DNA from: Convolutriloba macropyga | Lineage: Eukaryota | Assembly: GCF_964194025.1 (NCBI RefSeq) | Contig: NC_134474.1 | Span: 16,740,001-16,804,000 of the forward strand | Direction of reading: 5' to 3' | DNA length: 64,000 nt | Shown here: piece by piece, positions 16,051 through 55,683 of the stretch | Numbering within the stretch: the first letter of the stretch is position 1 | How the letters are laid out: each line of letters begins with the position of its first letter | Notes under the pieces: generated by a model | Databases searched by the model: none | Seen by the model: only the letters and a program-made list of their open reading frames with translations | What the model was told of the DNA's origin: nothing | Program-made: the position numbers and the translations under genes

Positions 16051-16051
16051 G

Positions 16052-18856: not shown

Positions 18857-19025
18857 TTATGGTGATATGATCATTACAGCTGTTAATTCGTGTTTGAAAG
18901 CTAACGTTGCTTTGGCCGAATGTAAACTTGTAGTTCCTATACTTACGCGTTGATATCAGACGAGTTAAACATTCCGAACTTCAGATTTTCTTTGAGTTTA
19001 TAGAGAATACTTCAAAATCACTCAC

Positions 19026-19258
19026 CTGAAAACGATGGCTTGGTATGTGACAGGATATAATACGAAACCCCTTCCTGGTTGAATGTACCCAGATCCTATG
19101 CTGGTCAAGTTATGCACAGACACTATAAATCCGTATTTTCCACTGCAAGTGCCTTCAACTTCACTGTACAGTTTCTTCCGCACTGTTTCGAGCAGCTTTG
19201 GGCCAAAATACCTCGGGTGCAATAGAATTTCATGCTCCAATGTCATCAAGTAAAACAT
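19026..19258 (-). CDS. POLR2G: RNA polymerase II subunit RPB7, coding exon 1 (remaining exon(s) not found in window)
   Basis: [22 protein letters not shown]...[12 protein letters not shown]...[19 protein letters not shown] is the conserved RPB7 N-terminal half. It ends at a phase-2 donor AG|GTGAGT at 19025. Confidence 0.95.
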
Positions 19259-19641
19259 TTTGAACCTCAAATTGACCTGAAATTGAACCTGAAGAAAGAC
19301 TCATCTCCGCGAACAGTCTAAAATATCTCTTCAGAGGTTTGATAATGCAGCACTGATAAGACAGCACGACTTCATCAAACAAAGTAGCGAGCATCGAATT
19401 CATTTCTTTTTACCAGATTGAATTAATTGCAACTAATTCAAGCAAACTGAGTAGTTCGAAATTACTGTCTTTTTTTGGGTAACTTGAGCTTGGAAAATCA
19501 GCATTTGCTAAAAAGATCAGAAAAAAACATTCAAAATCTTTACTAGATTAATTTACTGAAAACATCAACTAAATAAATTTATCAATTGTTTTGCGCATTA
19601 TATCAACAGAACACGACACATTTTCAGATCAAAAAGAAATC

Positions 19642-19890
19642 TCATTTGCTCTTTGAAGGAGTTTTGCTACTACTCCCACCAAAAGCAGCTTTAATCTTGG
19701 GGTATTTCTTCTCGCCTCCGCCTCCCTTGGGTTTAGTAGTAGTATGTGAATCGGCAACTCCTGTTTCGGCTGCTCTCGCGTGTTTGTTTTGTTCATCCTG
19801 GGCTAACGCGTGTCGTGTACTGATAACTTCACTTTCTATCTTCACTCTGTGATTGTACAAGTCTTCCAAGTGCGTCTTCGTCAATTCAAC
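19642..19890 (-). CDS. COPS7: COP9 signalosome subunit 7, exon 2 (C-terminus)
   Basis: Acceptor TTTTAAACAG at 19891, phase 0 with exon 1. VELTKTHLEDLYNHRVKIESEV resembles the CSN7 helical-bundle motif (..IESEV). The joined protein is 272 aa. Confidence 0.85.
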   Translation of the reverse strand, partial: VELTKTHLEDLYNHRVKIESEVISTRHALAQDEQNKHARAAETGVADSHTTTKPKGGGGEKKYPKIKAAFGGSSSKTPSKSK

Positions 19891-20545
19891 CTGTTTAAAA
19901 ATATCAATAAAAGAACAGAAATGATACCAATTGTGTTTCTAATGCCTTACAAAATGATGCTTAAAAAACTGAAAATCTCAGCCAACTTTCTAGAAACCGG
20001 CCCTTTAAAATGTAGCACAAATGTTTGGTCGGCAAATATTCTGAGCACACGTCAAACAAATATTACGTTCCAAAAAAATCGTGAAAAGGCGGTTTAAACG
20101 CTATCCAGCCTTCACGTATTTTTAGTACAAAGACAAATGTTTGAAATTAAAAGTTTGAAATGAATATGCTGAACCGAGAGTAAAAATATGCGCTTCTAAA
20201 TTAATTTATAAAGTTTTTTCATGAAAAATTCTTTTCGAAGAAAAGCCCTTAAAGATTTCAAAATCTCATCGAGATCTCAAAATTTATGTTTAATACTACA
20301 CAACGTACCTTTTAAAGGCTGATACTTAAAGATATTTGATTACCATTTTTATCATGAAAAAAAGTTTTTGAATGGTAACGATTTCTGAGCCAGATAAAAG
20401 CACTTATTTTTCTGAAAAATTTAAAAATTGAAAAGAAGGGCAATCGTGCCACTATAAGAATCAAATGCATTTCCAGCAAAGCAGGTTTTAGAAAGTTAGC
20501 GATCAGCTTGTTTCTATGAAATAAATTTAAACAAAATGTTTGAAC

Positions 20546-21115
20546 CTGCGATTCGACAGAGCCCAAAACAGACTGACAATTCTCAGACCACTTAGTCAAC
20601 ACATCAACCATATTCGTCATTTCCTCCTCTCCCTTTATGTCTCTCGAAACTGCCGACTGAACAAGCAGAATCCTATTCTTCTGGTCCATTTTACCCTTTA
20701 TAAGTCCATAGTAAATGGCATCAATTATCAAATCCTCTAATTCTCGAACGTTTGAAATTTTAAGCTCAGTAAAAAGCTGATCGTAGCTGATTGATTTTGT
20801 TTCATTCGCAAGGGATACTAATGTTAAACATTGAAGTTTACGGTAAGCTGCCGGTTCTAATTGCGGATGTTTGCTGGAATCGTAATCTGATAAACGTCCA
20901 TACGCGAAAACATTCAATAGTTGATATAAAGAAGCATGATTGCCGCTTTTCAGATCCACAATATTGGGCAACGATAGAATTTCCCCATAAACAAATATTT
21001 GGGGTGAGGTTAGAGCTTGTTTGATCATGGCGACCAGAGCTTCACCTTTGTGACTTTTGGACATGATCCGGAATCTTTCCAAATGAGGGTTGTTAAATGC
21101 AGTTTCGGCCGTCAT
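20546..21115 (-). CDS. COPS7: COP9 signalosome subunit 7, exon 1 (PCI domain)
   Basis: Motifs IFVYGEIL, LLNVFAYG, NVRELEDLIIDAIYYGLIKGKMDQKN, SRDI. 190 codons end at donor CAG|GTTCAA (20545). The ORF-track tail beyond ESQ is intronic. Confidence 0.93.
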
Positions 21116-21974
21116 TTCCTTCTGAAAATCAAAAATAAGATTCTTACCGTTTACTTCGTCAATCCATTGTCAATGCAGATAAACACTTCTTCTTTACTTT
21201 TTCAATTTCATTAAACAGCTCGAACAGAGTGAGCAGATATAAATACAAGGCTGCTCGGTAATGTGCGATCGCACATAAGGTTCCGACCCCGCTCATCCAC
21301 AATTTTGGCATAATCGTCTACCAAATGAGGAACAGATAGAAAAACACAAAAAATTCAAGTATTTTTCAAAAAAAACTGGTGTATGAACGAAAAGATAGCC
21401 TCCAAAGCAAATAACTCAGTGGAGTAAAAAATGATGCATTAGATTGATGAGATATGCCGATATTAAGAAAGCGAGCGAAGACGAACGGCAAAATCAAACA
21501 ACATCCAACATTAATTACATCAAAAAATTTATGTCCGTTTTAAAAATCAAAACTTAATAACAAAGTCAAAATAGCGTCAGATAAAACTGAAAATAAACAA
21601 AATACTTGTAATTCACCAGAAAAAATGGTTATTCACCAGTTCATAATAAAGCTTGGTAAGATTTAGACAAAAAAGAACAGAAACTTTAAAATTAGAAAAT
21701 TCGCTGTATTTTAAAAAAAAAACAATTAATTTCAAAGTAATGAAAACCATTAGGAATCAATTAAAATATCCCAGAGGTTTACAATTAACAATGCTTCTAT
21801 CGAAAGGAGTTAAAAACTCTTGGTATTCAATTGTTTATGCAGTTACAAAAAGAACAACAAATAGACAACAAACTAAAAATCAATAAAAACTTGCCAGAAA
21901 ATGCTTTGGAAGCCGTAAAGCCATACTTTGGCCCCCAAAATATGTTTGATTGCACCTTCGTCGAACACTGATAA

Positions 21975-22690
21975 TGTAGTATGTGACCGCTCATTAATGA
22001 AAATAAGCAACAATTAGACAAAATTTTGTAATACTTGTTTTTTTTCGAAAAAAAATTTATTTCCAAAACATGAAAGCCATTAATTATAAAATGAACAATT
22101 TGAATAGGTTCGTCCATTCTTCCAAAGGAAGCCCTTGAGACCTGCAATTATCCAGAAGATGTCTTACGTCTACAAAAAGAACGTCAAATATGACAAAAAT
22201 CAAATATTCATTTACTTTTTTTTGTGAAAAACCTGTGTTGAAGCCAGTAAAGTCATAACGAATTCTCTTAAAACATTAGATTTTATGACACCAATCCCTT
22301 TTGACACCTTCCCTTGAAATGTATTATGTGAGCTCTTATTAATGAAACTAGGTAACAAATAGACCAAAAAGAAAAAAGCAAGATTATGTAATTCTTATTT
22401 TTATCGAAAAAAATTTATTTCCAAAGACATGAAAGCCATTAATTATCAAATGAAAAATTTGAAGAGGTTCGTCCATTCTTCCACAGGAAGCCCTTGAGAC
22501 CTGCAATTATCCAGAACAAGGACCTGCAATTATCCTTACATCTACAAAAAGAACGTCAAATATGACAAAAATCAAAAATTAATTTACTTTTATTGTGAAA
22601 AACCCGAGTCGAAGCCAGTAAAGTCATAACGAATTCTTTAAAAACATTAGACTTTGTGACACCAATCCCTTTTGACACCTTCCCTTGACA
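21975..22690. repeat. Internal ~360 bp tandem repeat (2 close copies plus decayed neighbours), also at 25745-26460
   Basis: CATGAAAGCCATTAATTAT...GGAAGCCCTTGAGACCTGCAATTATCC...GACACCAATCCCTTTTGACACCTTCCCTTGA occurs twice per segment. Confidence 0.85.
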
Positions 22691-24318
22691 AACATAATGT
22701 CATCTTTAACCTTTGATTAACGAGACCGGGTAACAAACAGACAATAAAAGGAACAAAATTGCGAAGTTGAAATGTTTTTTTTTTCGTTGTTTTCGAAGTC
22801 ATGAAAGCCATTATCTATCTTCTAATATCAGAATATTGGCTGATCTACTCTTCCAGGAAAAGCCAATCAAACCGGGTCATTGTACAGGAAATTAAATACG
22901 ACTAAAAAAAACAAAGTAAAAACGACAGTTAAAGACAAAATTAAAAAATTCAATTAAATTCTTCGAGAAAGTATTGTCGAAGCGGTAAAGAACCACAATC
23001 TATATCTTTAAGGATTTAAATATTATCAATTGTGCGTTATTTTGAACGCCAAACATGTGATATATGAATCTAGTAGTATCAAAGCCAAAACACCATAACT
23101 TCAGGCGAAAAACCGCAATAAAGACTAAAATTGATTTCAGCAGAAAGAAGGAGCACTCTTTGATTGCTGACACTAAGCTACAAGTTGACCAAATTAAGAG
23201 AAAAATGAAGGCAGAGTTCAATAAGCCATTTTATATAAAAATCAAATATTTTGAAAGTCAAAACGACCAAAAGCTTTCAAGCAATCAACTAGATAAATTA
23301 ATTTCGATATAATTAGGAAGCCAATAGGACCTATCACTAGTGAGCTTTGATCTGAAATGTTCTGTTATTTAATTAATATAAAAAAGATCGATTTTTTAAA
23401 ATAAAATCCGACTGATGACAATCCGAATTATTTTTGGATTGTAACGGTCCAAGATTGGTACAGAACTAGGTCCTGCTAATGCTGATTGTCCATTAGGAAT
23501 GTTTAATTTTTGGAATGTCATTGATATAGATATTTTGTTAGTTAAAAAATCAAAAATAAATGCTGCGTTTTTGATAATCAACGAATAAAGTTAGCAAAAA
23601 ACGGCGAAGTTTTATTTACAGAGCACTCTCAACGGAAGTTGAAGTGGAATGAGCCCCCTTTTCAGTCTACAAAGATTGTGCAGTGGTGTTTGGTTGTGCA
23701 CTTCCTAAAATCGAAAAGCTCAGGTAACTTTCTAGAAACTGGTCCCTTAAAAAAGCAGAAACGTTTGGTCGGCAAAAATTCTGAGCACACGTCAAACAAA
23801 AATTACGTTCCAAAAAATTGCATCTCAAATCGTGAGAAAGCGACTTAAACGTCATCCAGCTTTCACGTTTTTCTAGTACAAACACAAATGTTTGAAATGA
23901 AAAGTTTGAAATGAATATGCTGAACCGAGAGTAAAAATATGCGCTTCTACATTAATTTATAATGTTTTTTCATGAAATCTTTTTTTCGAAGAAGCCCTTA
24001 TAAATTTCAAAATCTCAATATTTGCAAATTGAGATCTCAAAATTTATGTTTAATACTATACAACGTACCTTTTAAAGGCTGACACTTAAAGATATTTGAT
24101 TACCAGTTTTAAAGATATTTGATTACCATTTTTATCATGAAAAATTTTTTTAAATGTTAACGCTTTCTGAGCGAGCTAAAAACAGTTATTTTTCTGCAAA
24201 ATTGATACGGAGGGCAATCGTGTCACTATAGGAATCAAATAAATTTCCAGCAATGCAGGTTTTAGAAAGCTAGCGATCAGCTTGTTTCTATGAAATAAAT
24301 TTAACAAAATGTTTGAAC

Positions 24319-24888
24319 CTGCGATTCGACAGAGCCCAAAACAGACTGACAATTCTCAGACCACTTAGTCAACACATCAACCATATTCGTCATTTCCTAC
24401 TCTCCCTTTATGTCTCTCGAAACTGCCGACTGAACGAGCAGAATCCTATTCTTCTGGTCCATTTTACCCTTTATAAGTCCATAGTAAATGGCATCAATTA
24501 TCAAATCCTCTAATTCTCGAACGTTTGAAATTTTAAGCTCAGTAAAAAGCTGATCGTAGCTGATTGATTTTGTTTCATTAGCAAGGGACACTAATGTTAA
24601 ACATTGAAGTTTACGATAAGTTGCCGGTTCTAAGTGCGGATGTTTACTGGAATCGTAATCTGATAAACGTCCATACGCGAAAACATTCAATAGTTGATAT
24701 AAAGAAGCATGATTGCCGCTTTTCAGATCCACAAAATTGGGCAACGATAGAATTTCCCCATAAACAATAATTTGGGGTGAGGTTAGAGCTTGTTTGATCA
24801 TGGCGACCAGAGCTTCATCTTTGTGACTTTTGAACATAATCCGGAATCTTTCTAAATGAGGGTTAATAAATGCAGTTTCGGCCGTCAT
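24319..24888 (-). pseudogene. COPS7: Partial duplicate of COPS7 exon 1 with premature stop and no exon 2
   Basis: GAG>TAG at codon 164 (24397-24399), plus substitutions N8I, S19F, G24D, F41I, I52F, Q85H, A89T. The duplication ends inside the intron. Confidence 0.85.
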
Positions 24889-27800
24889 TTCCTTCTGAAA
24901 ATCAAAAAGAAGATTCTTACCGTTTACTTCGTCAATCCATTGTCAATGCAGATAAACACTTCTTCTTTACTTTTTCAATTTCATTAAACAGCTCGAACAG
25001 AGTGAGCAGATATAAATACAAGGCTGATCGGTAATGTGCGATCGCACATAAGGTTCCGACCCCGCTCATCCACAATTTTGGCATAATCGTCTACCAAATG
25101 AGGAACAGATAGAAAAACACAAAAAATTCAAGTATTTTTCAAAAAAAACTGCTGTATGAACGGAAAGATAGCCTCCAAGCAAATAACTCAGTGGAGTAAA
25201 AAATGATGCATTAGATTGATGAGATATGCCGATATTAAGAAAGCGAGCGAAGACGAATGGCAAAATCAAACAACATCCAACATTAATTACATCAAAAAAT
25301 TTTTGTCCGTTTTAAAAAACAAAACTTAATAACAAAGTCAAAATAGCGTCAGATAAAACTGAAAATAAACAAAATACTTGTAATTCACCAGAAAAAATGG
25401 TTATTCACCAGTTCATAATAAAGCTTGGTAAGATTTAGACAAAAAAGAACAGAAACTTTAAAATTAGAAAATTCGCTGTATTTAAAAAAAAACAATTGAT
25501 TTCAAAGTAATGAAAACCATTAGGAATCAATTAAAATATCCCAGAGGTTTACAATTACCAATGCTTCTATAGAAAGGAGTTAAAAACTCTTGGTATTCAA
25601 TTGTTTATGCAGTTACAAAAAGAACAACAAATAGACAACAAACTAAAAATCAATAAAAACTTGCCAGAAAATGCTTTGGAAGCCGTAAAGCCATACTTTG
25701 GCCCCCAAAATATGTTTGATTGCACCTTCGTCGAACACTGATAATGTAGTATGTGACCGCTCATTAATGAAAATAAGCAACAGTTAGACAAATTTTTGTA
25801 ATACTTGTTTTTTTTTTCGAAAAAAAATTTATTTCCAAAACATGAAAGCCATTAATTATAAAATGAACAATTTGAATAGGTTCGTCCATTCTTCCAAAGG
25901 AAGCCCTTGAGACCTGCAATTATCCAGAAGATGTCTTACGTCTACAAAAAGAACGTCAAATATGACAAAAATCAAATATTCATTTACTTTTTTTTGTGAA
26001 AAACCTGTGTTGAAGCCAGTAAAGTCATAACGAATTCTCTTAAAACATTAGATTTTATGACACCAATCCCTTTTGACACCTTCCCTTGAAATGTATTATG
26101 TGAGCTCTTATTAATGAAACTAGGTAACAAATAGACCAAAAAGAAAAAAGCAAGATTATGTAATTCTTATTTTTATCGAAAAAAATTTATTTCCAAAGAC
26201 ATGAAAGCCATTAATTATCAAATGAAAAATTTGAAGAGGTTCGTCCATTCTTCCACAGGAAGCCCTTGAGACCTGCAATTATCCAGAACAAGGACCTGCA
26301 ATTATCCTTACATCTACAAAAAGAACGTCAAATATTACAAAAATCAAAAATTAATTTACTTTTTTTGTGAAAATCTCGAGTCGAAGCCAGTAAAGTCATA
26401 ACAAATTCTTAAAAAACATTAGACTTTGTGACACCAATCCCTTTTGACACCTTCCCTTGACAAACATAATGTCATCTTTAACCTTTGATTAACGAGACCG
26501 GGTAACAGACAATAAAAGGAACAAATTTGCGAAGTTGAAATGTTTTTTTTTTCGTTGTTTTCGAAGTCATGAAAGCCATTATCTATCTTCTAATATCAGA
26601 ATATTGGCTGATCTACTCTTCCAGGAAAAGCCAATCAAACCGGGTCATTGTACAGGAAATTAAATACGACTAAAAAAAAAACAAAGTAAAAACGACAGTT
26701 AAAGACAAAATTAAAAAATTCAATTAAATTCTTCGAGAAAGTATTGTCGAAGCGGTAAAGAACCACAATCTATATCTTTAAGGATTTAAATATTATCAAT
26801 TGTGCGTTATTTTGAACGCCAAACATGTGATATATGAATCTAGTAGTATCAAAGCCAAAACACCATTACTTCAGGCGAAAAACCGCAATAAAGACTAAAA
26901 TTGATTTCAGCAGAAAGAAGGAGCACTCTTCGATTGCTGACACTAAGCTACAAAATGGCCAAATTAAGAGAAAAATGAAGGCAGAGTTCAATAAGCCATT
27001 TTATATAAAAATCAAATATTTTGAAAGTCAAAACGACCAAAAGCTTTCAAGCAATCAACTAGATAAATTAATTTCGATATAATTAGGAAGCCAATAGGAC
27101 CTATCACTAGTGAGCTTTGATCTGAAATGTTCTGTTATTTAATTAATACAAAAAAGATCGATTTTTTTAAATAAAAACCGACTGATGACAATCCGAATTA
27201 TTTTTGGATTGTAACGGTCCAAGACTGGTACAGAACTAGTCCTGCTAATGCTGATTGTCCATTAGGAATGTTTAATTTTTGGAATGTCATTGATATAGAT
27301 ATTTTGTTAGTTAAAAAATCAAAAATAAATGCTGCGTTTTTGATAATCAACGAATAAAGTTAGCGAAAAACGGCAAAGTTTTATTTACAGAGCACTCTCA
27401 ACGGAAGTGGAAGTGGAATGAGCCCCCTTTTCAGTCTGCAAAGATTGTGCAGTGGTGTTTGGTTGTGCACTTCCTGCAAATTTAATCAGAGTGGACTAAA
27501 TAAACTTATTTCGTGCTGTTTGTGATGAAAAAGTCTGAATTTTGTGAAATATTTAGCCGGAATTTGTGACAAAAAAAATTCAATGAAAATAGCCGACAAT
27601 ATATTTTGTCTTTAAACGTAAAATCAACAACATTTTCTTGAAAAATTTTATTAAATTTTATCAAAATTGGCGAAATTTTAGTTAAAAATTCCAAAAAAAT
27701 GTGAATGAAATCAACGGAATTCACTCTATTTTCTCGAAAGTTTAAACCTCGATATCTCCCTGTCAAAAACGAAAACCAAAAAAATCTTTTTAATTCAATA

Positions 27801-28896
27801 TTCTACGCTGGACAAGCTTTCTAATGATACCAGTCTCAACTCTCTACGATGAACATATCGATCGGCCAAAATTGACTGAACAAAAAAAACCCATGAGTAT
27901 ATAGTTCCTCCCCCCCCCCTCAAGATGGGTCGGAACAATAAGTCGTACGTGTCGCTTCCCTTCGCATCCGGAATTACGATACGAAATGAAGAAATATAGC
28001 AGGAGCAAATTTACCAAATAATTTCAAATAAAATTTTTGCATTTATACGCTATTAACCATACTATTTGCTCTAATCTCCAACTATGTACGGCTTTCCCTT
28101 CCTAAGGTTACGAGGAATACAGAAAACATGACCATACTTCGGTGGCAAGATATTGGTAAAGAGCATCAAAGTAATTTTTTACTGAAAACAAAACTACTGT
28201 TTTGCAGTTCCCGCAACTTGATGACTTTCCATTTATTGTGCGCAGTTGATATTTGATAACAGTTTAGGGAACAAAAATTATTAAAAATAATTAAAATTTT
28301 CAAAAAAGATAGTCTCTTAAAAAAATAAATCACTTGGTAAATTAATGGCTTTTCGTATTGGATTAATGAACTACGTTGTCTTTGACTATGATCATCTTTT
28401 GGTGGCAATATACAAAGATAGTGGTAAATAGCATGCAAGTATTTTATGAACATGAATATTGTTTACTGTTCTCACATTTTGATGACATCCCATTTATTTT
28501 GTGCAACTGATTATTAATAACAATTTACGAGAACACAAATATTTTCAATTATTTGACGACGTTTAAAATTTTCAAGTTTTGCTTTCGTAAAAAAGAAATT
28601 TTTAGTTTTACCAAACCAATTGATATTGTTAAAGTTGACCTTGATAAAGCTTGAAATATTTCTATCGAGGTAATCCACTTGTCCAAGTGGTGTTTTTATA
28701 ATGAGTAGATTTAGTCTTTTTAGAAAAACGGGTAAACAGAACAAGAAGGTTTCCAATCATCATTTTTCTAATCAATTTCATAGAAATTAAACCAACTGGT
28801 AATGGAGGTCAGTCACAATAAATATTTCCTAGTCCCATCACTTCCACGTGCACTTAATACACAGTCAAATAGCAGATAGTAGTATGCGATTAAATA

Positions 28897-29841
28897 AAAC
28901 ATACCCGGCAGATTGCCGGAAAATAGCCGCCGTTGATTCTAATAAGCATGATTGGGATTGAAAGAATAGAAGATATTGAAAAAAAATATTTTTGTACAAA
29001 AACATTTTTTAAGTCCGATTTATTTTGATGGCATTTCGTAGTTGAACATAACGTACTTCTGTTTCCTAGAGAGAGGGTACAGGGGCTACTATCAATTCCA
29101 ATAAGCATTAGAGATGGTAACTAAGACTTATAGGAACGACGTTCAAATAGCGGGCATCTAAAATTGGGCTTTATGGGTTTATCCCTTTTCTATTTCTGAC
29201 TTCAATTTTTTATACTGACTCTGTTCATTTTGAATTGCTTTGCTGAGCAACTGATGTTCAAAATCACTTTTAGCAGAATGAGAGAAGAGAGAAACTAGCC
29301 TAGAGAAGTCAAAAAGATATCACGCAAAATGTTGAAAAAGCGGCAAAATGAGGTAAAGCGAAACATTTTTTTATTCGACGAAGTAAAAAAACATAGCAGG
29401 ACAAGTCCTGACGTACAATTCAAAGAATTTTCATTGACTAAACAGAAAACTAGACCTAGAAAGGACTATGAATGGATTGGAAAAACCATTTAGAAAAAAA
29501 TCCGATCTAAAAAATCGAAAAAACAGAAAAAATCAAAGCGAAATTGCCGCATGTGAACAAAAAACCACTAGCGAGAAAGCGAATTTTTGTTCAAACACCG
29601 TTTTCTCACTCTACTTTAAATTCAGAGCGAAAAAATTTCACGCCGCAAAACCACTCGCTTTTTCGCTCCACTTCCTGTTTCGGCGTGACCAAAATCACTA
29701 CTCCAATTTGACTTCAAAAATCATGAAAATGTGTGAACAGATCTTAAAAAAAAGACAGCGCCCCAATACAATTCAAATTCTTTGAATTGTAAAAAAATAG
29801 GAGCGCTATAATAGCCGGCTGAGAAGATGAGGGCGGCTATT
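28897..29841 (-). mobile_element. Non-autonomous Helentron-like element (HINE/DINE-1 architecture), family 1
   Basis: Left end has hairpin CCGGCA-GAT-TGCCGG then subTIR AAATAGCCGCCG. Right end has AATAGCCG...GGCGGCTATT (subTIR plus partial inverted repeat). A-rich flanks, no TSD seen. Confidence 0.75.
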
Positions 29842-30147
29842 AACTAGCAAGGTACCAGTCAAAAAGTCATTCAGAGCCCACAAATTGATCCAAGGGAAAA
29901 AATAATTATCAAAAAACACATCGACGGATAGGACACAATGAAAGCCACAACTTTTCCTAAAACTGTACAAGCAAGGTGTCAATTATTCAGTTTCAAATCA
30001 TATCTAAGTTTGCTTCGTTCCAAATTAAGAAAGACGTCCGAATACGACGATCTCATCATAAAAAAGGATGCTACAATTCTCGAAAAGATCAACTCATATT
30101 GGAGCTTTATTAGATATTCGACTAAAACAAGGAAAACATTCGAACGT

Positions 30148-31142
30148 TCAGCGTCTCCATATTTTCAGAGTTCTGTCTTTGCTACCAGAAGCAACACACT
30201 GGCCATCGGGCGACCAATCAATTGCATACACCTGGTCTGCATGTCCGGGCAAATCCAGCAATAATTTTCCATCTTGCCAACACTTAATAGTCGAATCTTC
30301 ACTAGCTGAAACTATCAATCTGGAATCGGCGGACCATGCTAATTGGTAGACACTTGCCACATGACCTCGCAATGAGTACAAAAATTTTCCATCTCTTCCG
30401 TTCCAAACTTTTATTGATTTATCGAAAGAGGCACTTGATAATAATCGACCATCTGGGCTGAATCTGACGTCATTGATCAAGGCTTGATGACCTGTCATTC
30501 TGTTTATAGACTTCGGAGATTTCAAAGGTTCCCATAGAAACAATGTAAAATCGTCAGAACCTGAAACTAACCGCTCCGGATTTGATTTCGAGAACAAATC
30601 AAATTTAACTTTTGCCTCAGCTTTTAGTTTTTCAGGGTCAACATTATTGAAGGTGGTGGGAAGAATCGACGCGTCTTTAGGTTCAAACGCTCCGATTCTC
30701 ATAACATAATCTGAGTTCAAGGCTAATGTATTAACCCAATGAGCGTGACCTTGGAGAGTTTTTTTGACCTGTCCTGATGTCGGATCCCAAACCTTTATAG
30801 TTCTATCCTGGGATGATGAGTAAACGAATCCTTCACCTGACCACTTCACACATGTTACAGATTGCAGATGACCAGACAACACAAAATCGCATAACATAGT
30901 TTGACTGTTCCATATTCTTAAATCACCATCTTTACTCGAACTGACAAATTTAACGCATTCGCCATTGAGATGTAAAGGTTCCCAAGCTATACATGTTATC
31001 CACTGTTTGTGTCCAGATAGCTTTCTGCCCATTTGTGCACCAGTTGTTGCGTTCCAGATAATGACGTCGCCCCGTTTGCACCCAGAGGCAACTTTGAGGC
31101 CATTGGGCGCCCAGGCTAAGGCCAAAACCCAATCTGAGTGAC
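30148..31142 (-). CDS. NLE1: Notchless homolog 1 (Rsa4), exon 2, WD40 repeats
   Basis: Acceptor TCTTTCAG at 31143. Motifs GHKQWITCIAWEPLH, GHAHWVNTLALNSDY, ERLVSGSDDFTLFLW, RMTGHQALINDVRFSPDGR, DLPGHADQVYAIDWSPDG, ending LKIWRR. Confidence 0.96.
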
Positions 31143-31512
31143 CTGAAAGATTTTGAATGAAAAACTACATTTATTAATAATAGCCGTTTGGGTACACGGC
31201 GGCTTTTAATTACAGACAGAAATGACAGAATTTTTCATAGGTCTATAATACATTACAATCTACCATTGTTAACAATGTTATTTTAACGTATTAACTACGT
31301 GGCCTATAAAACTCGTTGCTGCTATTTTAATATCCCGTATAAAAAACCACACAGTATTACAATAGTTAAAACTTCAGAATCAACAACTTAATTCACAGTC
31401 GTGTCACGAATCAACTTTTTTTATTCCGAGATTTTTTATTCCGTATCAATTATGGCCCGTCAGCTGACGTCACCGATTGACTTATATTATAAGATAAATA
31501 CATTTTAGTTAC

Positions 31513-32002
31513 CTGCGCAAGTATGCTTGGGCGTCTCTGTAGTCAAATCCCAAAACCTCACAGTCGTATCGCCAGACCCCGAAGCAAGCTGCGATCCTGT
31601 GGGCGAAAAAGCAACATGCAAAACAGGCTGCGAATGACCTTCTAATGTTGAAGTACATCTAGCAACAGCTCTAACTCTGAATACTGCTTGTGCGTGGTAC
31701 ACAATATCAACTGCTTTCTCTACATTAATTTTAGTCCAGTCAATTGTTTTCTGTAGAGAGGTTAGAACCTCTTTGTCATCCAGGTAAAACGAGTAGGGAA
31801 CCCGGAACGCATCTCCATCATCCTCTTTCTTCGTATTTTTCAGAATCGAGTACAGGATTTCAGTTAATTGTTGCTTCGTGGTCGAAACTGGAACATCAAA
31901 TGACTGTGGGTTCACTTCACCCGTTTCGTCGAGCAAATTTACGAGAAGTCGCGAGTCTTCGGTTATACCGAGACGCTCCATCGGGTCTAATACACGCTTC
32001 AT
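31513..32002 (-). CDS. NLE1: Notchless homolog 1, exon 1 (NLE ubiquitin-like domain plus first WD40)
   Basis: PYSFY, EKAVDIVYHAQAVFRVRAVARCT, LASGSGDTTVRFWD. Phase-1 donor CAG|GTAACT at 31512 joins to exon 2 as AGHSDWVLAL, giving 494 aa. The start could extend to 32150 via a 64-nt intron. Confidence 0.94.
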
Positions 32003-32390
32003 CTTCAAAAAGTTGAAGCTATCAATCCAGGAATTGTTTTCAATGGCACATTTGCATCTGAAAGAAACATTTAAATGTTAAATTCTTCACATTTCAATTT
32101 CCAGTTTGAATAAGCTTTCACTTAAAGTATTGCATCTGTTCCGAAGTCATATAATGAGGGCAGGAATTATATGCTAGCTTGGCCTTTTGGTTCCGTCATT
32201 GTCAACCCAATAAATATTAATTGAAGAAAGATGTGAGTAGTATCATCCGAAAGCCGTTACGTGAACAGAGTATATACACAAATGGATTTCTGAATTTCGT
32301 TTCTAAGAAAAAAAAATGAATTTTCAAAAATATTGAAGTTTTTCCCCAAAAATTGATCAAACCGTTAACGTTGAAATTCATTAAAGTTCT

Positions 32391-38037: not shown

Positions 38038-38348
38038 TCACGAAGGCAACGAGCCTTTTAACAACAACCAATTTTTGACAAACGAGGAAATAGTATCAAT
38101 ATTGCTTTGCATATCATCAACTGAATTCGAGTCTAAATGAAGCACAATTTCATGTTTGTACGAACTCTGCGCCTCTTCCAAAATTGTCTGGAAAATTTCA
38201 CTGTCTAAATTCGAAGACAACTTTTTCTCATTATAGCCACGAGATTTCAGCCGGTCGAACAAGATCTCAGTGGAGCAACGAAGCACGACAACTAAGTCAA
38301 ACCAGCGTTCGGGAAAGAATTCACAGCCATGGTAGTCCACAATGTTTC
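38038..38348 (-). CDS. AK6: Adenylate kinase 6 (Fap7/hCINAP), exon 3
   Basis: Acceptor GTTTTAG at 38349. NIVDYHGCEFFPERWFDLVVVLR, RGYNEKKL, EIFQTILEEA; contains the hhhDxH Walker B of the AK6 family. Confidence 0.95.
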
Positions 38349-38851
38349 CTAAAACAACCGCGTGATCACATCAACTGGATGATTAATATCGGCTACATCA
38401 ACCTTAACGTATTCCCTTTCTCAACCAACTCGAACGTTCCATTATGAACTGACATTCAAATTTTCCCAAAACCACCCGCCTTAACCTAACGAAAGCAGAT
38501 GCACTTCAATTACCACAGGTGACCATTAAGGCGGCTTCTTGAATCTTTCAAGGGGTTTGCAGCGCCTGTGAACTTTTTGACGACTAAAGGGGGCTCAACA
38601 GAAAAGAGGAGAAGCAATAGTACGAAAATCGACATACTAAAACCATATCTCTGTACCAGTCTTGACAATGCTTTTTGAGAATTTCGATTTTAGGTTTCTT
38701 AAAAAATCAAATCGTTGTCTTTTTAAAGCATGGTCTAAAGTAGTTAGCAAAATTGCGTTCAATCAATGAACAACAGCAAGCTCACACGGCTGACAACATA
38801 TCTAAACATAATAGCATGTGATTTGAAAGCATTAATTAGCATAATTGTTAC

Positions 38852-39011
38852 CTCCGGGATGCATTCTGGGCTCCAACTCGTCCAGGAGGAGGTCTTCGTT
38901 AAGTACATGACACTGGAATTCTTCGTCCCACTCATCCAGACAGGAGAACTCCTTAGCCACATCTCCAACATTGATGTAGGTAAAGTCAGGGAGGGATGTT
39001 GATAACTGCTC
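38852..39011 (-). CDS. AK6: Adenylate kinase 6, exon 2
   Basis: Acceptor TTTTAAG (39012), donor GAG|GTAACA (38851). YINVGDVAKE...WDEEFQCHVLNEDLLLDELE. Confidence 0.92.
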
Positions 39012-40329
39012 CTTAAAATGGAGAATTCGAGAGGAATTGTCCACAAAAAAATCCTAATCCTACTAGTATAATTTGATCTAAAAAATTAGATTAGATCTTT
39101 TTAAAGCATGGTCTAAAGTAAAGGAAAAATCAGAAAACTTAAGGGGAAAAAGACAAAAATGTTTTCAGCTTAATTTTATGAGTTGTTAAAATTGAAATTA
39201 TTAAAGCGTTCTTCGAAGCTTCGAAGCTAAGAGTTTGAATTCATTTTAAAAACTTACCAAAAAAACTGAATCAGCACACACTACTGAGTTCATAGGATTT
39301 TCGAGTTTCCAAAACCATCTACAGACATTCAAAACTGAGGCGAAGTTTGTACCAAGTGAATTTACTAAAAGACGAGTTTAAAATTCTAAAAGGTATGGTC
39401 AACTGGACTACAATTTTATGCAAGTCTCTGAGCATTGAGTGATAAAAACGAGAGCAAAAATTGCAGATCATTAAAATTCATTTGAAAAAATTGCTAATTC
39501 GCCTCTAATACAATAACTGGTAGTCGAAATATGCAAAACAAAAATTGCTGACAGAAAAGAGCTTTGCAGACCATTCACATAAAAAATGATAAGCTTAAAA
39601 ACTAGATTGAAAAAAAAAACATTTGGATTTCTGATAAAACTTTTTTTTGTCTAATATTATGACCCCCGAAAAATTGATCAGAGGCAAATATACATGGCAA
39701 ATCATGGTCCATGATTAGACATTCATTAGTACTCTATTTTGGCTTGAACCAAACAATGGGGAGGAACTATAAGCTCAATTCTTTTTTGTTCAGTAAAATC
39801 TGACCGATTGATAAACTTGACGTATCAGGACATGAGTACCATCACCAGAAAGACCATCGAGTTTAAAAACTTTAATAGGAGGCGCGTCGGGAATTAATGA
39901 GTAGTTTTTTAACATTAGCTGATTTTCACCATTATTCATGTTTTCATAGCAATTCAGTCATATTTTATATACTATTAAAAATACTCATATTTTACATACT
40001 ATTAAAACTAGAGAAAGCAAGAAGGTTTTGTCAGCTGACACTGACAAAACTACAGAGCTTAGTCAGGGGGCAAAACAACGCAATTTATCTTCGGGATTGA
40101 CTAAGCAAATGAATAATTTAATAATTGATGACACCGCTTCCCGCCTTCAAAGGCCTCCCAAAACAACCCTTTTCTACCCCTATAAAGGATGAACTGCACC
40201 AGATATCTGTTATTGACCATCTGTTGTTGACTAAATTAGATATGACTAGTGGTGACCGAACTTCGATGAGATGATGTACTCCAAATCAATATGGGCCTAC
40301 TCGCAATTTACGCCTTTACTTTCTAAAGT

Positions 40330-42930
40330 GAAAAAGATACCACGCGATTTAGCGAAGCGGATAGACGAGATTGTGCAGTCCGCGAGTTCAGCAAATCTAG
40401 CTGCAACAGATAAATCTAAATGAACTCCCAGACCTCGAAGCTATCAGCAGTAAGCACATCCCTATTATAAGGTTCATTCCTGTAAAGTTTTGGGTGAGAT
40501 GGTCAGAATTACTAACGTCCGCTATCGGTGCTTGCATTTCTCACGCGCAATCGGAAAATTGAAAAAAACTCTTTGCATTTAGCATATGTGTTCTACGCGC
40601 GTCTAATCGTGAGGGTAAGAAGCACGAGCAGTAGCAAGAGAAACAGTTGTTGAGCAGACTTGAGTGATAGAAATCAGGTGATTATGCTGCACTGTGGTAC
40701 GAGGCGGCCCCAATGAAGCAGTCAAGTAAAACTAGGAATGAGTAAATAGACGCTTTAGCAAGCCGCGCGAAATCTCTTTGTCTGCAGAGGCAGTTTGGAA
40801 GGGCAGCGAAAGTTCTGTCTTCTAACGGCGTCGCTTCTGACAATACTGCAACGTTGAATGAACTTAAAAAGCTCCACCCTAAGGAAAAGCAACCTGATCA
40901 CCAATTCGATCAAGATGCTAACACGAACGCATATCAATTTGACGAGGCATCAGTATTCTTCCAAATCGAGTCGCTTTCCAAATTTACTGCAGCTGGGCCG
41001 TCAAAAAAGTATCCCGAGCATCTGCTGCATGCAGTAAACTGCGGTGCCCTAATCAATCAAAGCGACCATTCACTAGTTTAACAAAATTCGTCAACTTAGC
41101 CAGCAGGGGTCAGCTTCCGGAATTCCTTGCTCCTATACTATGTAGTGCAACCCTAAATGCATCGCAAAAGCTGAAAGGTGGGGTCCGTCCTATCACTGTT
41201 GGGGAAGTAATTCGACGTCTTATTGCTAAATGCATAGCTCGTGAAGCGAATTCAGAAGCTGCTGATCTATTTAACACAAAATAATTGGGATTAGCAGTCA
41301 GCGGTGTTGCTGAGAGCATAGTACACGCAACAAGAATTTCCTTTGAAAAACTGCAAAAATAAAAAAATTCCGGAATATTGCAGATTGATTTCAAAGCTGC
41401 CTTCAATTCGGTAAAAAGAAGCAAGGTTTTGGAAGCAGTCGCTAAATTCTTACCTAGTGATGCTCCTTTTTGCTACTCAACACAGTCATTTGCATTTTAA
41501 CAACCCATTTATATGGCCAATCGGGAGCTCAAAAAAGGAAACATTTGGAGCCGCTTTTAAAAAAATTGAAACAAAATTACTAAATCTAGTACAGCATAAT
41601 TGGTATTTGGATCTTTGTTGGTACCCAACAAAAGATTTGCACAGCATTGAATTTTTAAAAAAATTTGGGTGAAGGATGCGGTTTCGAGCTCAATAGAAAA
41701 ATGTGAGCTTTGGTCACCCGTTGAACTGAATGCTATAGATAACTGAGTAAGGAGAAATAGCAAAGAAGGACTTGAGATCTTGGGCGCTGCCATCGGCAAT
41801 CCCAGCTTTGTTGCTGCATCTTTGAGGAAAAGAGTCAACAAAATATAGCTGCTCGACCACCTGGCGTATCTAGACGACCCTCATTGTGCACTAGGAATTC
41901 TTTGAAGCTGTCTGGGTGCCCCAAAGATGGTATATTCCATGCGATGTAACACTATCTGACAAATCCTCTGTTATTTTGAGAATATATTAGGCACAATTAC
42001 AAGTGACAACGCTTGGAAGCAGGCTTGTCTACCAATAAGCAAAACTGGCATTGTAATTACACAAGCAGTTGACCAATTGAAAGCGGCGTTTGTTGGGTAA
42101 GTATCGCAGAGAGACGCTTTAGTAGAACAAATAACCAGTGAGAAAATAGCAGACAATCAAATTTTCAGAGAGACAGTGGAAGAACTGAAGAATCTAGAAA
42201 TTAGTGAATATACACAACACAGGAGACACTTGACGAGGCTGTGCAAGATTCAGGAGGCACTTGACGATATTGCTTTTTCTGACCTTTTTGGTAATCAGAT
42301 TTCAAATCGGGAGAAAGCTCGTTTGCTTTCACTAACGTTGCCTCAATCTGGTGCCTGGCTATCCGCACCTCCAATCCCTAGTCTGGGCCTTCACCTTCAG
42401 CCAAATGAATTCAGAGCCGCATTGAACTAACGGATCGGTGTTCCGTTATACATTGAGGAACGAAAGTGCCCTTACTGTCAAAACGGCAGACTGGACAAGC
42501 TGGGTGATCACGCCTTGAGCTGTCATGGTCGGGTATTAACTCAAGGCCAGGAGACATACTTGCGCAGCTGAACAGCGGGACAACCATCTGCGTTAGATGT
42601 AACCATCACTTCCCCACTGCAGCCCCGTCTAATTTCAGATGCGGCGAGGAGGTGTGACTTTGCTCTGACAAATGCTGAAGAAGTGAAATATGAACAATAT
42701 GACCAAAAATGTGCCGAAATAGGTATTCAGTTTGTACCACTTGAGTTCGAATCTTTCGGGGGCTTCTCAAACATTTGGTTCGAAAAAATTTGAAATGAAT
42801 AGCCTTGCTTGCCGATAACCAAAGCTCTCAACCGGCTGGTTTATCAATTGCCTACAATCGGGTATCTCAAGGAGTCTCATTGACCTTAAAGAGAGGTTCA
42901 GCCATAATAATGATTGCCAGAGATCCCCTG
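40330..42930 (+). mobile_element. Decayed CRE-like non-LTR retrotransposon (RT, zinc knuckle, restriction-like endonuclease) in AK6 intron 1, antisense
   Basis: Across stops and frameshifts: AAGPS, GGVRPITVGEVIRRLIAKC (~41180), IDFKAAFNS (~41385), WYLD (~41600), GLEILGAAIG, SGAWLSAPP, CPYC...GDHALSC (~42467), ALDVTITSP, FVPLEFESFGG (~42731). Confidence 0.85.
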
Positions 42931-43650
42931 TTATGAGACTCATTCGTGCGACAACACCCTTAGCCCCACAATGGTTAATTTACAGTCTTGGCTCTCCCAA
43001 TTTTAGTTGCCCAGTTATTGCCGTGCGCGAACATGTTTGTCACCCAATGAGTGGGGACAATGGTCATTTCTTCCGTTCAACCCGATTGTGTGGACTGATG
43101 ACAAAAATTTTGAAGACCCGATTGTGAGGGTTTCTGGGAACAAACAAAAGGCAAATACTCAATTGCGTGGGCACCAAGGTGATTTGTGGGCTTAAGGCTT
43201 ATCGTAAGAAAACTTTCTGAGAATCGCCTGAACTTAAAAATGATCTCAACCATGAGTTCCCCAATCAAGCATCCCTTAAATGTATGATTTTAAAAGTTAC
43301 AAAAAATTCAATATGCTAAAGAATATTATCATAATGGTATTACGTGAGTTGCTGGACGTTTATAGATGAATAAAAGTTGCAGAATTCTGCCTCTTGCTTC
43401 ATTCTGCTAAAACTTGACTATTCACTGATTAAAATTTTAACTATTTCAAAATAAAAAGGTAGAAAAATCGACCTATTTTGCGGGTTTTCATAGAAATTTG
43501 TCAGAAGTAATGACCATTCGCACTTTCTAGCTGAATAAAAGCTATTTTTACTTCAACTCAGCGGAGCGCCCTGGAATTAAGTGCTGCCAGCTTTTGCTAA
43601 ATTGAATTTTATCCAATTTGCAGTAATTTCAGCTAATTTTATTGCTCATT

Positions 43651-44465
43651 GCTAATTTCTATCAACAATATAATTTTATTTGCTAATGAAGAGCACCAAG
43701 GACAACGTCTTATGAATTCAATCATTATTTTTTCAAGTAATGGTACAACTTGACGAGTCAAGTGACATTGAATTAATTAAAATAAGTTTATGTTTTTGCT
43801 AAGTCTAAGGTTATGTTTTTGCAATAAAATTGATTTCTAGAAAACCTTTCGCCTTCTACCTCAAGAACTTACCAGGGCGCTGATTGGCCATTGTTCTCAA
43901 AAATCAGCCATTGTTGTCAAAGTTGAGCGTTTGGCAATGTTAATTTTTATCGATTTTCAAAGTCATTGTTTTTGTTGTTAAACTTCAGGCAAATACGTTT
44001 ACTTAGCCTGCATATACGTAGGCCAAATCAATCGACGCCTTCTCGCTAAATTCTATCAACAATATACTTTTATTTGCTAATAAAAGCACAAAGGACAACG
44101 TCTTATGAATTCGTTCATTATTTTTTCCAGTTATGGTACAACTCAAGTGACATTGAATTTATTTAAATAAGTTTAAGCCTAAGAGTTTCGACATTTTTTG
44201 AAAACAATTTTACATAACAATGTTTTTGCAATTAAATTGAGTATGTAGAAAACCTTTGGCCTTCTACACCAAGAAATTACCAGGACGCTGATCGGCCATT
44301 GTTGTCAAAAATCAGCCATTGTCGTCAAAGCTGAGCGTTTGGCAATGTTAATTTTTTTTTCGATTTTCAAAGTCATTGTTTTCGTTGTTAAATTTTAGGC
44401 AAAGTCTTATTATAGGCAAATACGTTCAATTAGCCTGCATGTACGTAGGCAAAATAAATTGACGT
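43651..44465. repeat. Diverged ~400 bp tandem duplication (43651-44040 and 44045-44465)
   Basis: GCTAA.TTCTATCAACAATATA...GGACAACGTCTTATGAATTC...TACGTAGGC occurs twice. Confidence 0.85.
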
Positions 44466-45040
44466 TTCCTCGGTAAATCCCTTTTAGATGTTTTTGGATA
44501 CTTTGCAAATTTCTGAAACATAATTGGTCGTTTCTCCGGAACTATCAGCTAATCATAATCTCCAACATTGATATTTTTCTTTTCGAGCACATGTATAACT
44601 TAGATATCTTTAACAGTTCTCTAACAGTATAGGCTGCTTTGCGCTATCTTTGATCCCAATTGCGCAATTTTTCATTCAGATTCTCAATTACCTTTTCATT
44701 TTATCGAGATGGAAACAAAATACACCCCCGTCTTCTAGTTGTCAAAAGTTGAAAAAGGAGATGGGGAATGAGGGGTGTCAAAAAATGTGCATCAGCACAT
44801 TATCGAGCCTCCTTGCTAGAGATTAATGGCGACCAATAAGATTTAAAGTAAAAAAATGAAACCAATTCCGATGCACTTTTGGTTTGAATTTAGTAGTACT
44901 GCAATTTACGAAATCCTCAACCTATGAATACCTATAAATTTAACTAACTAGTGATTGCATTTGCACAACAAATGTCTTGATTTATTAGATCATACTTTTC
45001 CAGATATTAAGGCAGATTACTCAGATTAAGCAATATAAAC

Positions 45041-45139
45041 CTGCAAAGTCTGGGACAGCGTGCTTTTCCCAGTAGCGGGAGTTCCACAAATGAGAATATT
45101 GGGAAGAGTGCGAGTTTCAGGCGTAGTATGAGTCGCCAT
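45041..45139 (-). CDS. AK6: Adenylate kinase 6, exon 1 (P-loop); absent from the ORF track
   Basis: MATHTTPETRTLPNILICGTPATGKSTLSQTLQ, 33 codons, donor CAG|GTTTAT at 45040, phase 0 with exon 2. Spliced product is 189 aa. Confidence 0.92.
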
Positions 45140-45822
45140 GGGACAAGTCCACACTCCTATGCTGACAACCCGATAGTCACGTAACAAAACAAAATTATCT
45201 GAAAAATAATTGGCATTAATTTAACGGAAACTCAAATACGAAAATACTATCAGTTACGGAAAATCGCTAATGTGCATTCGCACACAATGTTTGAAACCCA
45301 ACCCCCCAAATGATGGCTAATGAATAAATTTAATTAAATTATAATTTACCATCGCGCTGAATGTTAATCTCAGTTAAGTTTTAAAAATGAATTCTACTTC
45401 ATGGTATTGTTAACGAATAGATTTATACTATTTTGACGGTCTGATTCTTTCCAGAATGATAGTAGCGTCCCTTTTTTAAAAAATGTACAACAGCTTTCAA
45501 AACAATTCAGAATCCATTCCTTATTGTCCCTTCCAGACAGCATATTACAAAACCTCCTCTATTAAAAAAATGAAAAATAGGCGGCAAATAGCCACCTTTG
45601 ACTCCAGTGATGCACATCGGGATTAAAACAGAAAAAGCAGAGATAGGAATTTGTTGAAATTTCTCTAGGTGTCAAAAATGTTCTAATTTGGTGTGCAGCT
45701 TCAGTTCGATTCCAAAATTAAAATAAAAATCAGCTTCTAAACTGAATACTTATAAGCCTAATACTAATGCCAGCTAGCAACCCCTCCAATAAACTTTGAT
45801 AAATTTACGCAGCATGACTTAC

Positions 45823-50283: not shown

Positions 50284-50344
50284 TAAATTTCTTCAAAATC
50301 CGGTTAAATAAGAAATTCGGTCAGTACAAAAATAAAATCTTTAA

Positions 50345-52463: not shown

Positions 52464-52479
52464 AATAAAGAGTACTGAG

Positions 52480-52770
52480 GGTGTCAGGACAATTTACCCA
52501 TTTGTATTTTACCCAATGCCAACTTAACCAATTTATCCTATTGCTAAATTTACCATATTTATATAATATTACTATATAATAAATGGCCTGTTTGACTTGA
52601 TATGAAACTAACACAACATAACATGGGATTATATTGTCCACGTAAATATTTTAAATAATCCTTGTAATAGCGATTGCTAAATTGTAATCAGATAATTGAA
52701 CGAAAAGATCAAAGAGAATTGGGTAAAATGGCATTGGGTACAATGGAATTGGGTAAATTGTCATGTAACC
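52480..52770. mobile_element. MITE, Mutator/Foldback-like, 291 bp
   Basis: Perfect 9-bp TSD AGTACTGAG (52471-79 and 52771-79), GG...CC termini, and ~55 bp imperfect TIRs built from TTTACCCAAT sub-repeats. Confidence 0.9.
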
Positions 52771-52939
52771 AGTACTGAGTAGTCATGATTACAGATTACT
52801 CATGACTTCTGAGCAATAGAAGACCGACAAAAAAAATTGCTGAAAACTTTGTTGCAATTGTGCGCAATTAACAAACATTAATTTAACAATTTCAATAATA
52901 ATCGAACAGAAAAGTAAAACTTAAACTGCAAATCAATAT

Positions 52940-53804
52940 CTAAATACCACAAACTCTTTGAATATAGAAATCATCTCTCCAGAAGCAATTAGTTTTCAGC
53001 AATAAGTCTAGTTCTTCTTGGCGCGTACTAAATTCCGGCTTTTTTGCCATAACATATCCAAAGACAAGCAGAAACTCAAGGTGATTCATACTTTTCGACC
53101 ACTGTTCAATTGACTTGTTGATCTGAAACTTTTCGAGAATTCCTGGAGCGGCTTGAAATGCTAACACCTTAAGATTTGGTATACTTTGAACCGCATCCAT
53201 TAAAAACTCAAATTCTTTCCGAATATTTTTGTCGATACCAACTAGATGCACACAAAGCACCTCTATTGAAGAATCTTGGATTTTGGTCATTGTTTCGCAT
53301 TGCCCTTTCTTTTCCTTTGATGACCTCCAATACGTCAAAGCCAAGTTTCTCAAACCTTTAGGAATAACAACATGAGAGAAAATATCAGCTGGAATTGACA
53401 ATGTTTGACATCTTGCACCTACAAGGTACTCAGTTTGATTCCAAGATTCCGCTTCATCGGGCTCCAAAATGCGACTCCCAATTTTGATGAACTGAAGGTT
53501 CGGTGCATTCTTTTCGAAAAAGGTGAAAAAGGACGCTTTAGGCTGTTTCAGCATTTCTATGTCTAAAAGTTTCAAGTTCGGGAACCGAGGGGTATCCGGA
53601 AGTTTGGGAACTTCAGGAGTCTGACGGACTTGACGATGACGTCGTAGGAATTGATCAAAACCATCTTCCGATTCATCGGAATCGGAAAAATCAGAAATAT
53701 CATCCATGATCCAATTGGCTTGAATAACTTCTTCGAAAAACCACGCTTTCGCTATGTTCAAGGTCCTCATGCGAGGGAACCATTTTGATGACAGGCTCAA
53801 GATT
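52940..53804 (-). CDS. Probable terminal exon of a divergent leucine-rich-repeat protein (possibly F-box/LRR type)
   Basis: ~287 open codons, acceptor GTTTGTTCAG at 53805, LRR-like motifs FPRMRTLNI, FPNLKLLDI, APNLQFIKI, IPNLKVLAF. Upstream exons not seen. Confidence 0.6.
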
Positions 53805-55590: not shown

Positions 55591-55683
55591 TTACCCGAAG
55601 AATTTCGGAAGCATCTCGAAGCGTCAAAAATTCAAAGGAAACCGTAAATACATCTGGAACTACAAAATTCGTTTTGAAACATT

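Follow-up and report, generated by a model that had tools for sequence, protein, structure and literature searches.

Spliced-leader (SL) operons of nematodes, as described for Caenorhabditis elegans and Trichuris muris, group unrelated housekeeping genes on one strand, including genes for ribosome-biogenesis and transcription factors; their spacers span a few hundred bases, an acceptor lies just before the downstream ATG and a polyadenylation (poly(A)) signal follows the upstream stop codon. We found a similar arrangement in the acoel Convolutriloba macropyga, in a stretch of 64,000 nucleotides (nt) from chromosome C7 (positions 16,740,001-16,804,000; hereafter the window), where RPB7, COPS7, NLE1, AK6 and an orphan gene lie in a row on the minus strand. 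The COPS7-RPB7 spacer (383 bp) and the short spacers of the orthologous row in the sister species Symsagittifera roscoffensis (239-520 bp) are of nematode size, whereas most C. macropyga junctions measure 2-34 kb, compared with published intercistronic medians of 1 to 517 bp (~100 bp for C. elegans, 517 bp for Trichuris; PMC7986045), and the C. macropyga precursor is one that we infer. The operons of tunicates (Ciona, Oikopleura) and flatworms (Schistosoma and other parasitic flatworms, PMC12582326) resemble this row in that one leader serves both operonic and stand-alone genes, so that operons are recognizable only by spacing and precursor RNA, as is the case here. Unlike the tunicate spacers of ~1-60 bp (PMC7986045), the shortest acoel spacers measure hundreds of bases. 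Among acoels, SL trans-splicing has been described in S. roscoffensis, with a published leader of 32 nt and 30.2% of genes trans-spliced, and operons were not reported (PMC9911081); C. macropyga shares with this species a 31-nt leader and the orthologous cluster, located on S. roscoffensis chromosome OY783235.1. We found no description of acoel or xenacoelomorph operons in the literature searched, and we report for the first time that the cluster is conserved and that it has been stretched in C. macropyga. We also know of no specialized SL2-type leader in acoels.

The explanation that we favor, with moderate confidence, is that the row represents an old SL-resolved, operon-like cluster of convolutid acoels that has been stretched by transposon activity in C. 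macropyga. On one strand, OY783235.1 carries the glyoxalase-like, Med6, AK6, NLE1, COPS7, RPB7 and NT-C2 genes, and the same seven genes were found in C. macropyga in identical order and orientation. The distances from stop codon to ATG at the six junctions were as follows.

Glyoxalase-like to Med6: 520 bp in S. roscoffensis, ~11 kb in C. macropyga
Med6 to AK6: 382 bp in S. roscoffensis, ~34 kb in C. macropyga, with the orphan gene and a tandem array
AK6 to NLE1: 239 bp in S. roscoffensis, ~6 kb in C. macropyga
NLE1 to COPS7: 284 bp in S. roscoffensis, ~9 kb (9,033 bp) in C. macropyga
COPS7 to RPB7: ~5.9 kb in S. roscoffensis, 383 bp in C. macropyga
RPB7 to NT-C2: ~640 bp in S. roscoffensis, ~5.9 kb in C. 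macropyga

The four S. roscoffensis spacers of 239-520 bp, which include both untranslated regions (UTRs), are operon-like in their layout and fall within the known operon range. They occur in a genome of 1.1 Gb with 34,493 genes (PMC9911081), for which we computed a mean gene spacing of ~32 kb from the figures of the genome paper. AATAAA or ATTAAA was present in 3/4 of these spacers, and the AK6-NLE1 spacer contained none of the six hexamers scanned; poly(A) signals are treated here as sequence motifs only. Upon alignment of the two species, only the coding DNA could be matched, with 72-77% identity, so the species split is old; 175-200 Myr (million years) was used for a split within the same family in a phylogenomic study (PMC11809588).

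The genes of the row in C. macropyga are given below in window positions, with negative values lying before the window start.

96.1-91.6 kb (outside the window), minus strand: glyoxalase-like gene
80.5-79.5 kb (outside the window), minus strand: Med6
52940..53822 including acceptors, minus strand: orphan open reading frame (ORF) resembling leucine-rich repeat (LRR) proteins, 53773-52943, 276 amino acids, ATG at 53773, single-copy, inside the 34-kb Med6-to-AK6 gap
38038..45139, minus strand: AK6, with exon 1 at 45139-45041 (ATG at 45139), exon 2 at 38999-38850, exon 3 at 38349-38041 and the stop codon at 38040-38038
30148..32002, minus strand: NLE1 (Notchless), with exon 1 at 32002-31508, exon 2 at 31146-30151 and the stop codon at 30150-30148; Pfam NLE and WD40
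19642..21115, minus strand: COPS7, with exon 1 at 21115-20546, a GT-AG intron, exon 2 at 19890-19645 and the stop codon at 19644-19642; Pfam PCI and CSN7
19259..19641, minus strand: COPS7-to-RPB7 spacer, 383 bp from stop codon to ATG
19025..19258, minus strand: RPB7 (POLR2G) exon 1, ATG at 19258; Pfam SHS2_Rpb7-N
-356..-520 and -911..-1036 (before the window start), minus strand: RPB7 exons 2-3, from the exon map
19.3 to -1.0 kb, minus strand: RPB7, whole gene
-6.9 to -12.9 kb (outside the window), minus strand: NT-C2-domain gene

A preliminary description of the window had assigned RPB7, COPS7, NLE1, AK6 and an LRR gene to the minus strand. This orientation was borne out for all five genes in the window (7/7 with the flanks), and four of the identities were confirmed by Pfam, the AAA_18 match of AK6 corresponding to its last exon (38349-38041). 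The COPS7 product was 100% identical to the NCBI 272-residue C. macropyga model, and the AK6 product was identical to the 189-residue model of the same species. All cis introns of the row were of the GT-AG type. The spacing of 383 bp between the COPS7 stop codon and the RPB7 ATG, also taken from that description, was exact, and this is the sole operon-sized spacer in the window haplotype. RPB7, which is single copy in the genome, had been placed within 19026-53804; this is correct for exon 1 but not for exons 2-3, which lie 356-1036 bp before the window start, beyond an intron 1 of ~19.4 kb in the window haplotype that houses a satellite array (600-16322). As for the LRR gene, the minus-strand ORF is real, but it gave zero Pfam matches and its resemblance to LRR/F-box proteins, seen in language-model features, was weak; its only homologue among 1.8 billion representative proteins was itself, and the S. 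roscoffensis cluster does not contain it. In this ORF, the first ATG past the acceptor (53785) begins a 27-codon ORF in another frame, which overlaps the start of the main ORF (53702-53785).

We also observed that several C. macropyga introns have no counterpart in S. roscoffensis, including the 361-nt GT-AG intron of NLE1 (31147-31507). In S. roscoffensis, each of NLE1, Med6 and the glyoxalase-like gene consists of one ORF, and exons 2 and 3 of RPB7 are joined into one. The difference spans the whole cluster and means that introns were either gained in one of the two lineages or lost in the other.

Candidate trans-splice acceptors were present just before the ATG of each gene in the window, as listed below.

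Within 19277..19296, minus strand: two RPB7 candidates, acceptor 1 (CAATTTCAG, AG ending at 19277), 18 nt before the ATG, and acceptor 2 (TTTCTTCAG, AG ending at 19289), 30 nt before the ATG
21122..21130, minus strand: COPS7 acceptor (GATTTTCAG), 6 nt before the ATG
32058..32066, minus strand: NLE1 acceptor (TTCTTTCAG), 55 nt before the ATG
45199..45207, minus strand: AK6 acceptor (ATTTTTCAG), 59 nt before the ATG

The distances of 18, 6, 55 and 59 nt reported earlier for RPB7, COPS7, NLE1 and AK6 were all reproduced, and the LRR-like ORF had acceptors at 53805 and 53814, 31 and 40 nt before its ATG. TTTCAG occurs at most 60 nt upstream of 5.0% of all ATGs on the minus strand, which gives a probability of ~6e-6 for finding it by chance at 4/4 genes. 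The positions were also retained between genomes. In particular, the distance from acceptor to ATG at COPS7 was 6 nt in C. macropyga, 6 nt in S. roscoffensis and 8 nt in a third acoel genome; at NLE1 it was 55 nt in C. macropyga versus 57 nt in S. roscoffensis, and at Med6 it was 9 and 8 nt in two genomes. The acceptors before the ATGs are non-random and positionally conserved. The NLE1 acceptor is immediately followed by an upstream ORF of six codons (ATG CAA ATG TGC CAT TGA) at 32040-32057, which would fall in the leader-spliced 5' UTR.

The C. macropyga genome contains many genes for the leader RNA. The published S. roscoffensis leader showed >2,600 exact occurrences in the genome, with none inside the window by exact search. 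Eight leader copies were read, each followed by unrelated sequence, which would fit retrocopies. Additionally, we found 1,293 SL RNA gene copies genome-wide in which a GT donor comes right after the 3' part of the leader (...AAATAG); many of these copies are arrayed in tandem. A single SL RNA unit that was read contained the full 31-nt leader, followed by a stretch able to pair with the leader and a GC-rich hairpin. Since the exon ends in ...AAATAG before GT, the leader is 31 nt long and corresponds to the published 32-nt sequence minus its final A; the published 32nd base would then be the first base of many target exons. On leader-bearing reads, the leader is expected to end in ...CTTATTAAATAG. 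The leader followed by AGAGT was rare, with only 5 sites genome-wide, and this form of the donor was rejected, as the true exon end is ...AAATAG followed by GT. Several hundred of the 1,293 SL RNA copies were located on chromosome C9 at 23.1-23.7 Mb, arranged head-to-tail and head-to-head with a spacing of ~1.1-2 kb. By this evidence, C. macropyga performs SL trans-splicing.

Transcripts of another acoel (runs SRR19329409 and SRR19327882; COPS7 63% and NLE1 77% identical) place the leader at corresponding sites. At its 5' end, the COPS7 contig of this relative carries the final 9 nt of the leader, joined 7 nt upstream of the ATG; the NLE1 contig carries the final 15 nt, joined 81 nt upstream. 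Upon comparison, these SL junctions matched the C. macropyga acceptor positions at COPS7 (6 nt) and NLE1 (55 nt), those of S. roscoffensis (6 and 57 nt) and, at COPS7, that of the third genome (8 nt), and leader addition at the acceptors described above is most likely in C. macropyga as well. The same NLE1 contig (L026, run SRR19329409) extends 332 nt past the stop codon (contig positions 1582-1913), beyond an AATAAA starting 4 nt after the stop codon, and ends exactly on ...AATTTCAG (TTTCAG). In this one contig from one relative, the end could represent RNA cut at the trans-splice site of the next gene. Three other RNA contigs were set aside: two AK6-like contigs (L032 and L038) were without the leader and are probably not of acoel origin, and contig L027 was rejected as a mapped poly(A) site, as its end, 22 nt after the NLE1 stop codon, falls inside a T-run. 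An exact contig look-up of S. roscoffensis NLE1 returned genome contigs only and zero RNA contigs.

We propose that the 5' end of each mRNA would be formed by trans-splicing of the 31-nt leader to an acceptor a few to ~60 nt before the ATG. In the ancestor, as in S. roscoffensis still, spacers of a few hundred bases would have separated most genes, which were probably transcribed as one polycistronic precursor that polyadenylation and SL trans-splicing would have resolved into single mRNAs. In the C. macropyga lineage, transposon insertions, tandem arrays, a tandem duplication and an inserted orphan gene would then have expanded most junctions to 2-34 kb. With a fixed acceptor, the mature mRNA would be the same wherever transcription begins; such independence from the start site would explain why insertions are tolerated, even 150 bp from an ATG. 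For genes that follow a long gap, start sites of their own or ones brought in by transposons are the more probable, whether or not some read-through persists. The hybrid operons of C. elegans, in which downstream genes of a former or partial operon can be expressed through read-through as well as from a promoter in a lengthened spacer of ~1-2 kb, show the dual drive that we propose for the long gaps, but in place of such spacers the C. macropyga row has transposon-filled tracts of 6-34 kb. COPS7 and RPB7, 383 bp apart, likely still form a two-gene operon. On the 3' side of COPS7, AGTAAA variants of the poly(A) signal were found ~85-100 nt after the stop codon, and on that of NLE1, an AATAAA was found 37 nt after the stop codon.

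The material that fills the junctions was examined in the window and in a second C. macropyga assembly (ENA ERZ25071359), which is 96-98% identical and most likely represents the other haplotype. The principal elements are listed below.

600..16322, no strand assigned: satellite array in RPB7 intron 1, 15.7 kb, with a strand composition opposite to that of its flanks and gene
19965..27475, minus strand: 3.74-kb unit duplicated in tandem (19965-23706 and 23707-27475, 95.4% identical)
21268..22544, no strand assigned: high-copy repeat of 1.28 kb, starting ~150 bp upstream of the COPS7 ATG, with a contig depth of 1e4-1e5 in DNA runs
28889..29843, no strand assigned: young, high-copy transposon of ~950 bp, 305 bp past the NLE1 stop codon
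32067..38037, no strand assigned: AK6-to-NLE1 gap, ~6 kb of dispersed repeats, of the same size in both haplotypes and 239 bp in S. roscoffensis
54440..64000, continuing to ~67.3 kb past the window, no strand assigned: tandem array of ~1-2.5 kb units, 88-98% identical

As evident from these elements, the gaps are kilobases long and filled with transposable elements, as had been noted before: high-copy repeats, tandem arrays and a tandem duplication were all found. The ~950-bp transposon had 8,175 first-look candidates genome-wide, with copies 94-97% identical, and forms local same-strand clusters elsewhere. The array from 54440 to 67.3 kb fills much of the gap between Med6 and the LRR-like ORF and embeds dispersed repeat families of the other gaps. 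When 20 open frames of the gaps were scanned against Pfam, zero matches were obtained, and no intact transposon genes were found in the gaps. The preliminary description had listed COPS7 but had overlooked a second, broken copy of exon 1 in the upstream duplicate (24888-24319). This copy carries 7 amino-acid changes and a TAG stop, and its acceptor, at 24895, and its donor are intact; were it transcribed, the copy could receive the leader and be spliced to exon 2, yielding a nonsense mRNA.

The two haplotypes differed. From NLE1 to COPS7, the second haplotype measured 1,942 bp, compared with 9,033 bp in the window; the 3.74-kb unit was present as a single copy, and the ~950-bp transposon, a 1.1-kb segment and the 1.28-kb repeat were absent. 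Its satellite measured ~2.2 kb, compared with 15.7 kb, and its RPB7 intron 1 was ~5.9 kb, compared with 19.4 kb. The stretching of the spacers is partly recent and still polymorphic between haplotypes.

Several observations weigh against the operon-like cluster. No junction is compact in both species, the COPS7-RPB7 spacer being 383 bp here and 5.9 kb in S. roscoffensis; in the third acoel, neither NLE1 nor RPB7 was found within 10 kb of COPS7; and the order conserved between two members of the same family could be plain background synteny. Sense-strand AATAAA was not depleted in the gaps, with 59 observed versus 47 ± 7 expected from composition; as a test for selection against poly(A) hexamers, this count favors neither side. 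The tail of the read-through NLE1 contig of the relative could be pre-mRNA or DNA carry-over. Finally, the four sequencing runs examined at 16400-22399 were DNA, and leader addition in C. macropyga is what we infer: across this interval they showed no splice joints, no leader ends and an even depth over introns and spacer, as DNA does, and DNA runs were used solely for mapping the high-copy repeats.

A rival account sees a row of independent genes, each with its own promoter in both species and with the SL trimming the outron, and no polycistronic precursor at any time; the S. roscoffensis row would be a gene-dense island whose order reflects background synteny. We regard this account as possible but rather unlikely. 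It agrees with the missing neighbors in the third acoel, with the toleration of kilobase insertions at some junction in both lineages, with the ~30% of S. roscoffensis genes that are SL trans-spliced in a genome paper without operons (PMC9911081), and with the tunicates, where SL-spliced genes are mostly monocistronic (PMC7986045). However, four consecutive spacers of 239-520 bp, both UTRs included, leave little space for promoters in a genome with an average gene spacing of ~32 kb; 7/7 genes share one strand in both species, and the NLE1 contig of the relative passes a poly(A) signal to reach the next acceptor.

The opposite account, namely that one transcription unit resolved by the SL still covers 35 kb or more between the LRR-like gene and RPB7, and perhaps ~100 kb if the glyoxalase-like gene is taken as its beginning, draws in part on strand composition. 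The sense strand was T-rich throughout the gaps (AT skew of +0.13 to +0.21 on the plus strand), in repeated and non-repeated DNA alike, where repeated means repeated within the 164-kb region studied. Introns mostly had the same sign, with AT skews of +0.05 to +0.16, and those of NLE1 and the glyoxalase-like gene were near zero. A T-rich sense strand had been described for ~16.3-64 kb. It was indeed T-rich in every gap, but the domain of positive skew is larger, running from ~-12 kb to +104 kb with breaks only at the satellite and the region of the glyoxalase-like gene, and is not specific evidence for one transcript. This domain coincides with the run of minus-strand genes, and the tandem array from 54440 onward accounts for the strongest T-skew.

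Repeat orientation was similarly uneven. Dispersed repeat pairs in the skew domain comprised 131 direct and 4 inverted pairs. Of the 43 pairs shared between the domain and its left flank (-60 to -12 kb, a stretch of mixed skew), 42 were direct and 1 was inverted. This co-orientation could stem from the mode of spread of the elements or from selection linked to transcription or replication. Because the repeats are co-oriented beyond the cluster and the transposon forms same-strand clusters, the bias can derive from the spread of elements as well as from transcription-linked selection. The skew is compatible with transcribed gaps but is not evidence for transcription.

An expanded transcription unit draws support from a gap T-skew at least equal to that of true introns, in repeated and non-repeated DNA, and from the excess of direct repeat pairs, which selection on transcribed DNA would yield. 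The high-copy repeat ~150 bp before the COPS7 ATG leaves scant space for a private promoter, and the density of poly(A) hexamers in the gaps equals that in introns. Nevertheless, the gaps, at 6-34 kb, exceed every described intercistronic region by a factor of 10-300 (PMC7986045), and ~1 sense-strand AATAAA per kb would need to be ignored. The skew and co-orientation reach far past the cluster and may reflect local same-strand spread rather than transcription. We consider it doubtful, and a single 35-kb transcription unit is unlikely. Very improbable is the assignment of the acceptors to 5'-UTR introns, with a non-coding first exon upstream and no leader: a 5'-UTR intron also leaves an acceptor just before the ATG, but the COPS7 and NLE1 mRNAs of the related acoel bear the leader exactly at this position, and the leader gene family is abundant in the C. 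macropyga genome.

An operon resolved by trans-splicing, as the preliminary description had proposed, was thus sustained in part: the animal performs SL trans-splicing, the acceptors match the SL junctions of a relative and the orthologous cluster is compact, but the 6-34 kb gaps far exceed the intercistronic distances described so far, and the skew is not specific to one transcript. A stretched, formerly compact cluster remains the explanation that we prefer. For annotators, it is a warning to place gene boundaries in such genomes according to leader and poly(A) sites. If the expanded operon were true after all, SL operons would survive massive expansion of their spacers, and strand-biased composition would mark transcription units of at least 100 kb. 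Given the collinearity of seven genes and the polymorphism of the spacers, the operon question is directly testable with existing data; stranded poly(A) RNA-seq of C. macropyga exists under BioProject PRJEB75559 (PMC13650328). The row constitutes a natural experiment: a compact version in S. roscoffensis contrasts with a stretched one in C. macropyga, whose two haplotypes also differ (1.9 versus 9 kb), and allele-specific RNA could show whether an SL operon tolerates transposons in its spacers or is broken by them. Such clusters are of wider interest, as the Xenacoelomorpha matter for reconstructing early bilaterian genome organization.

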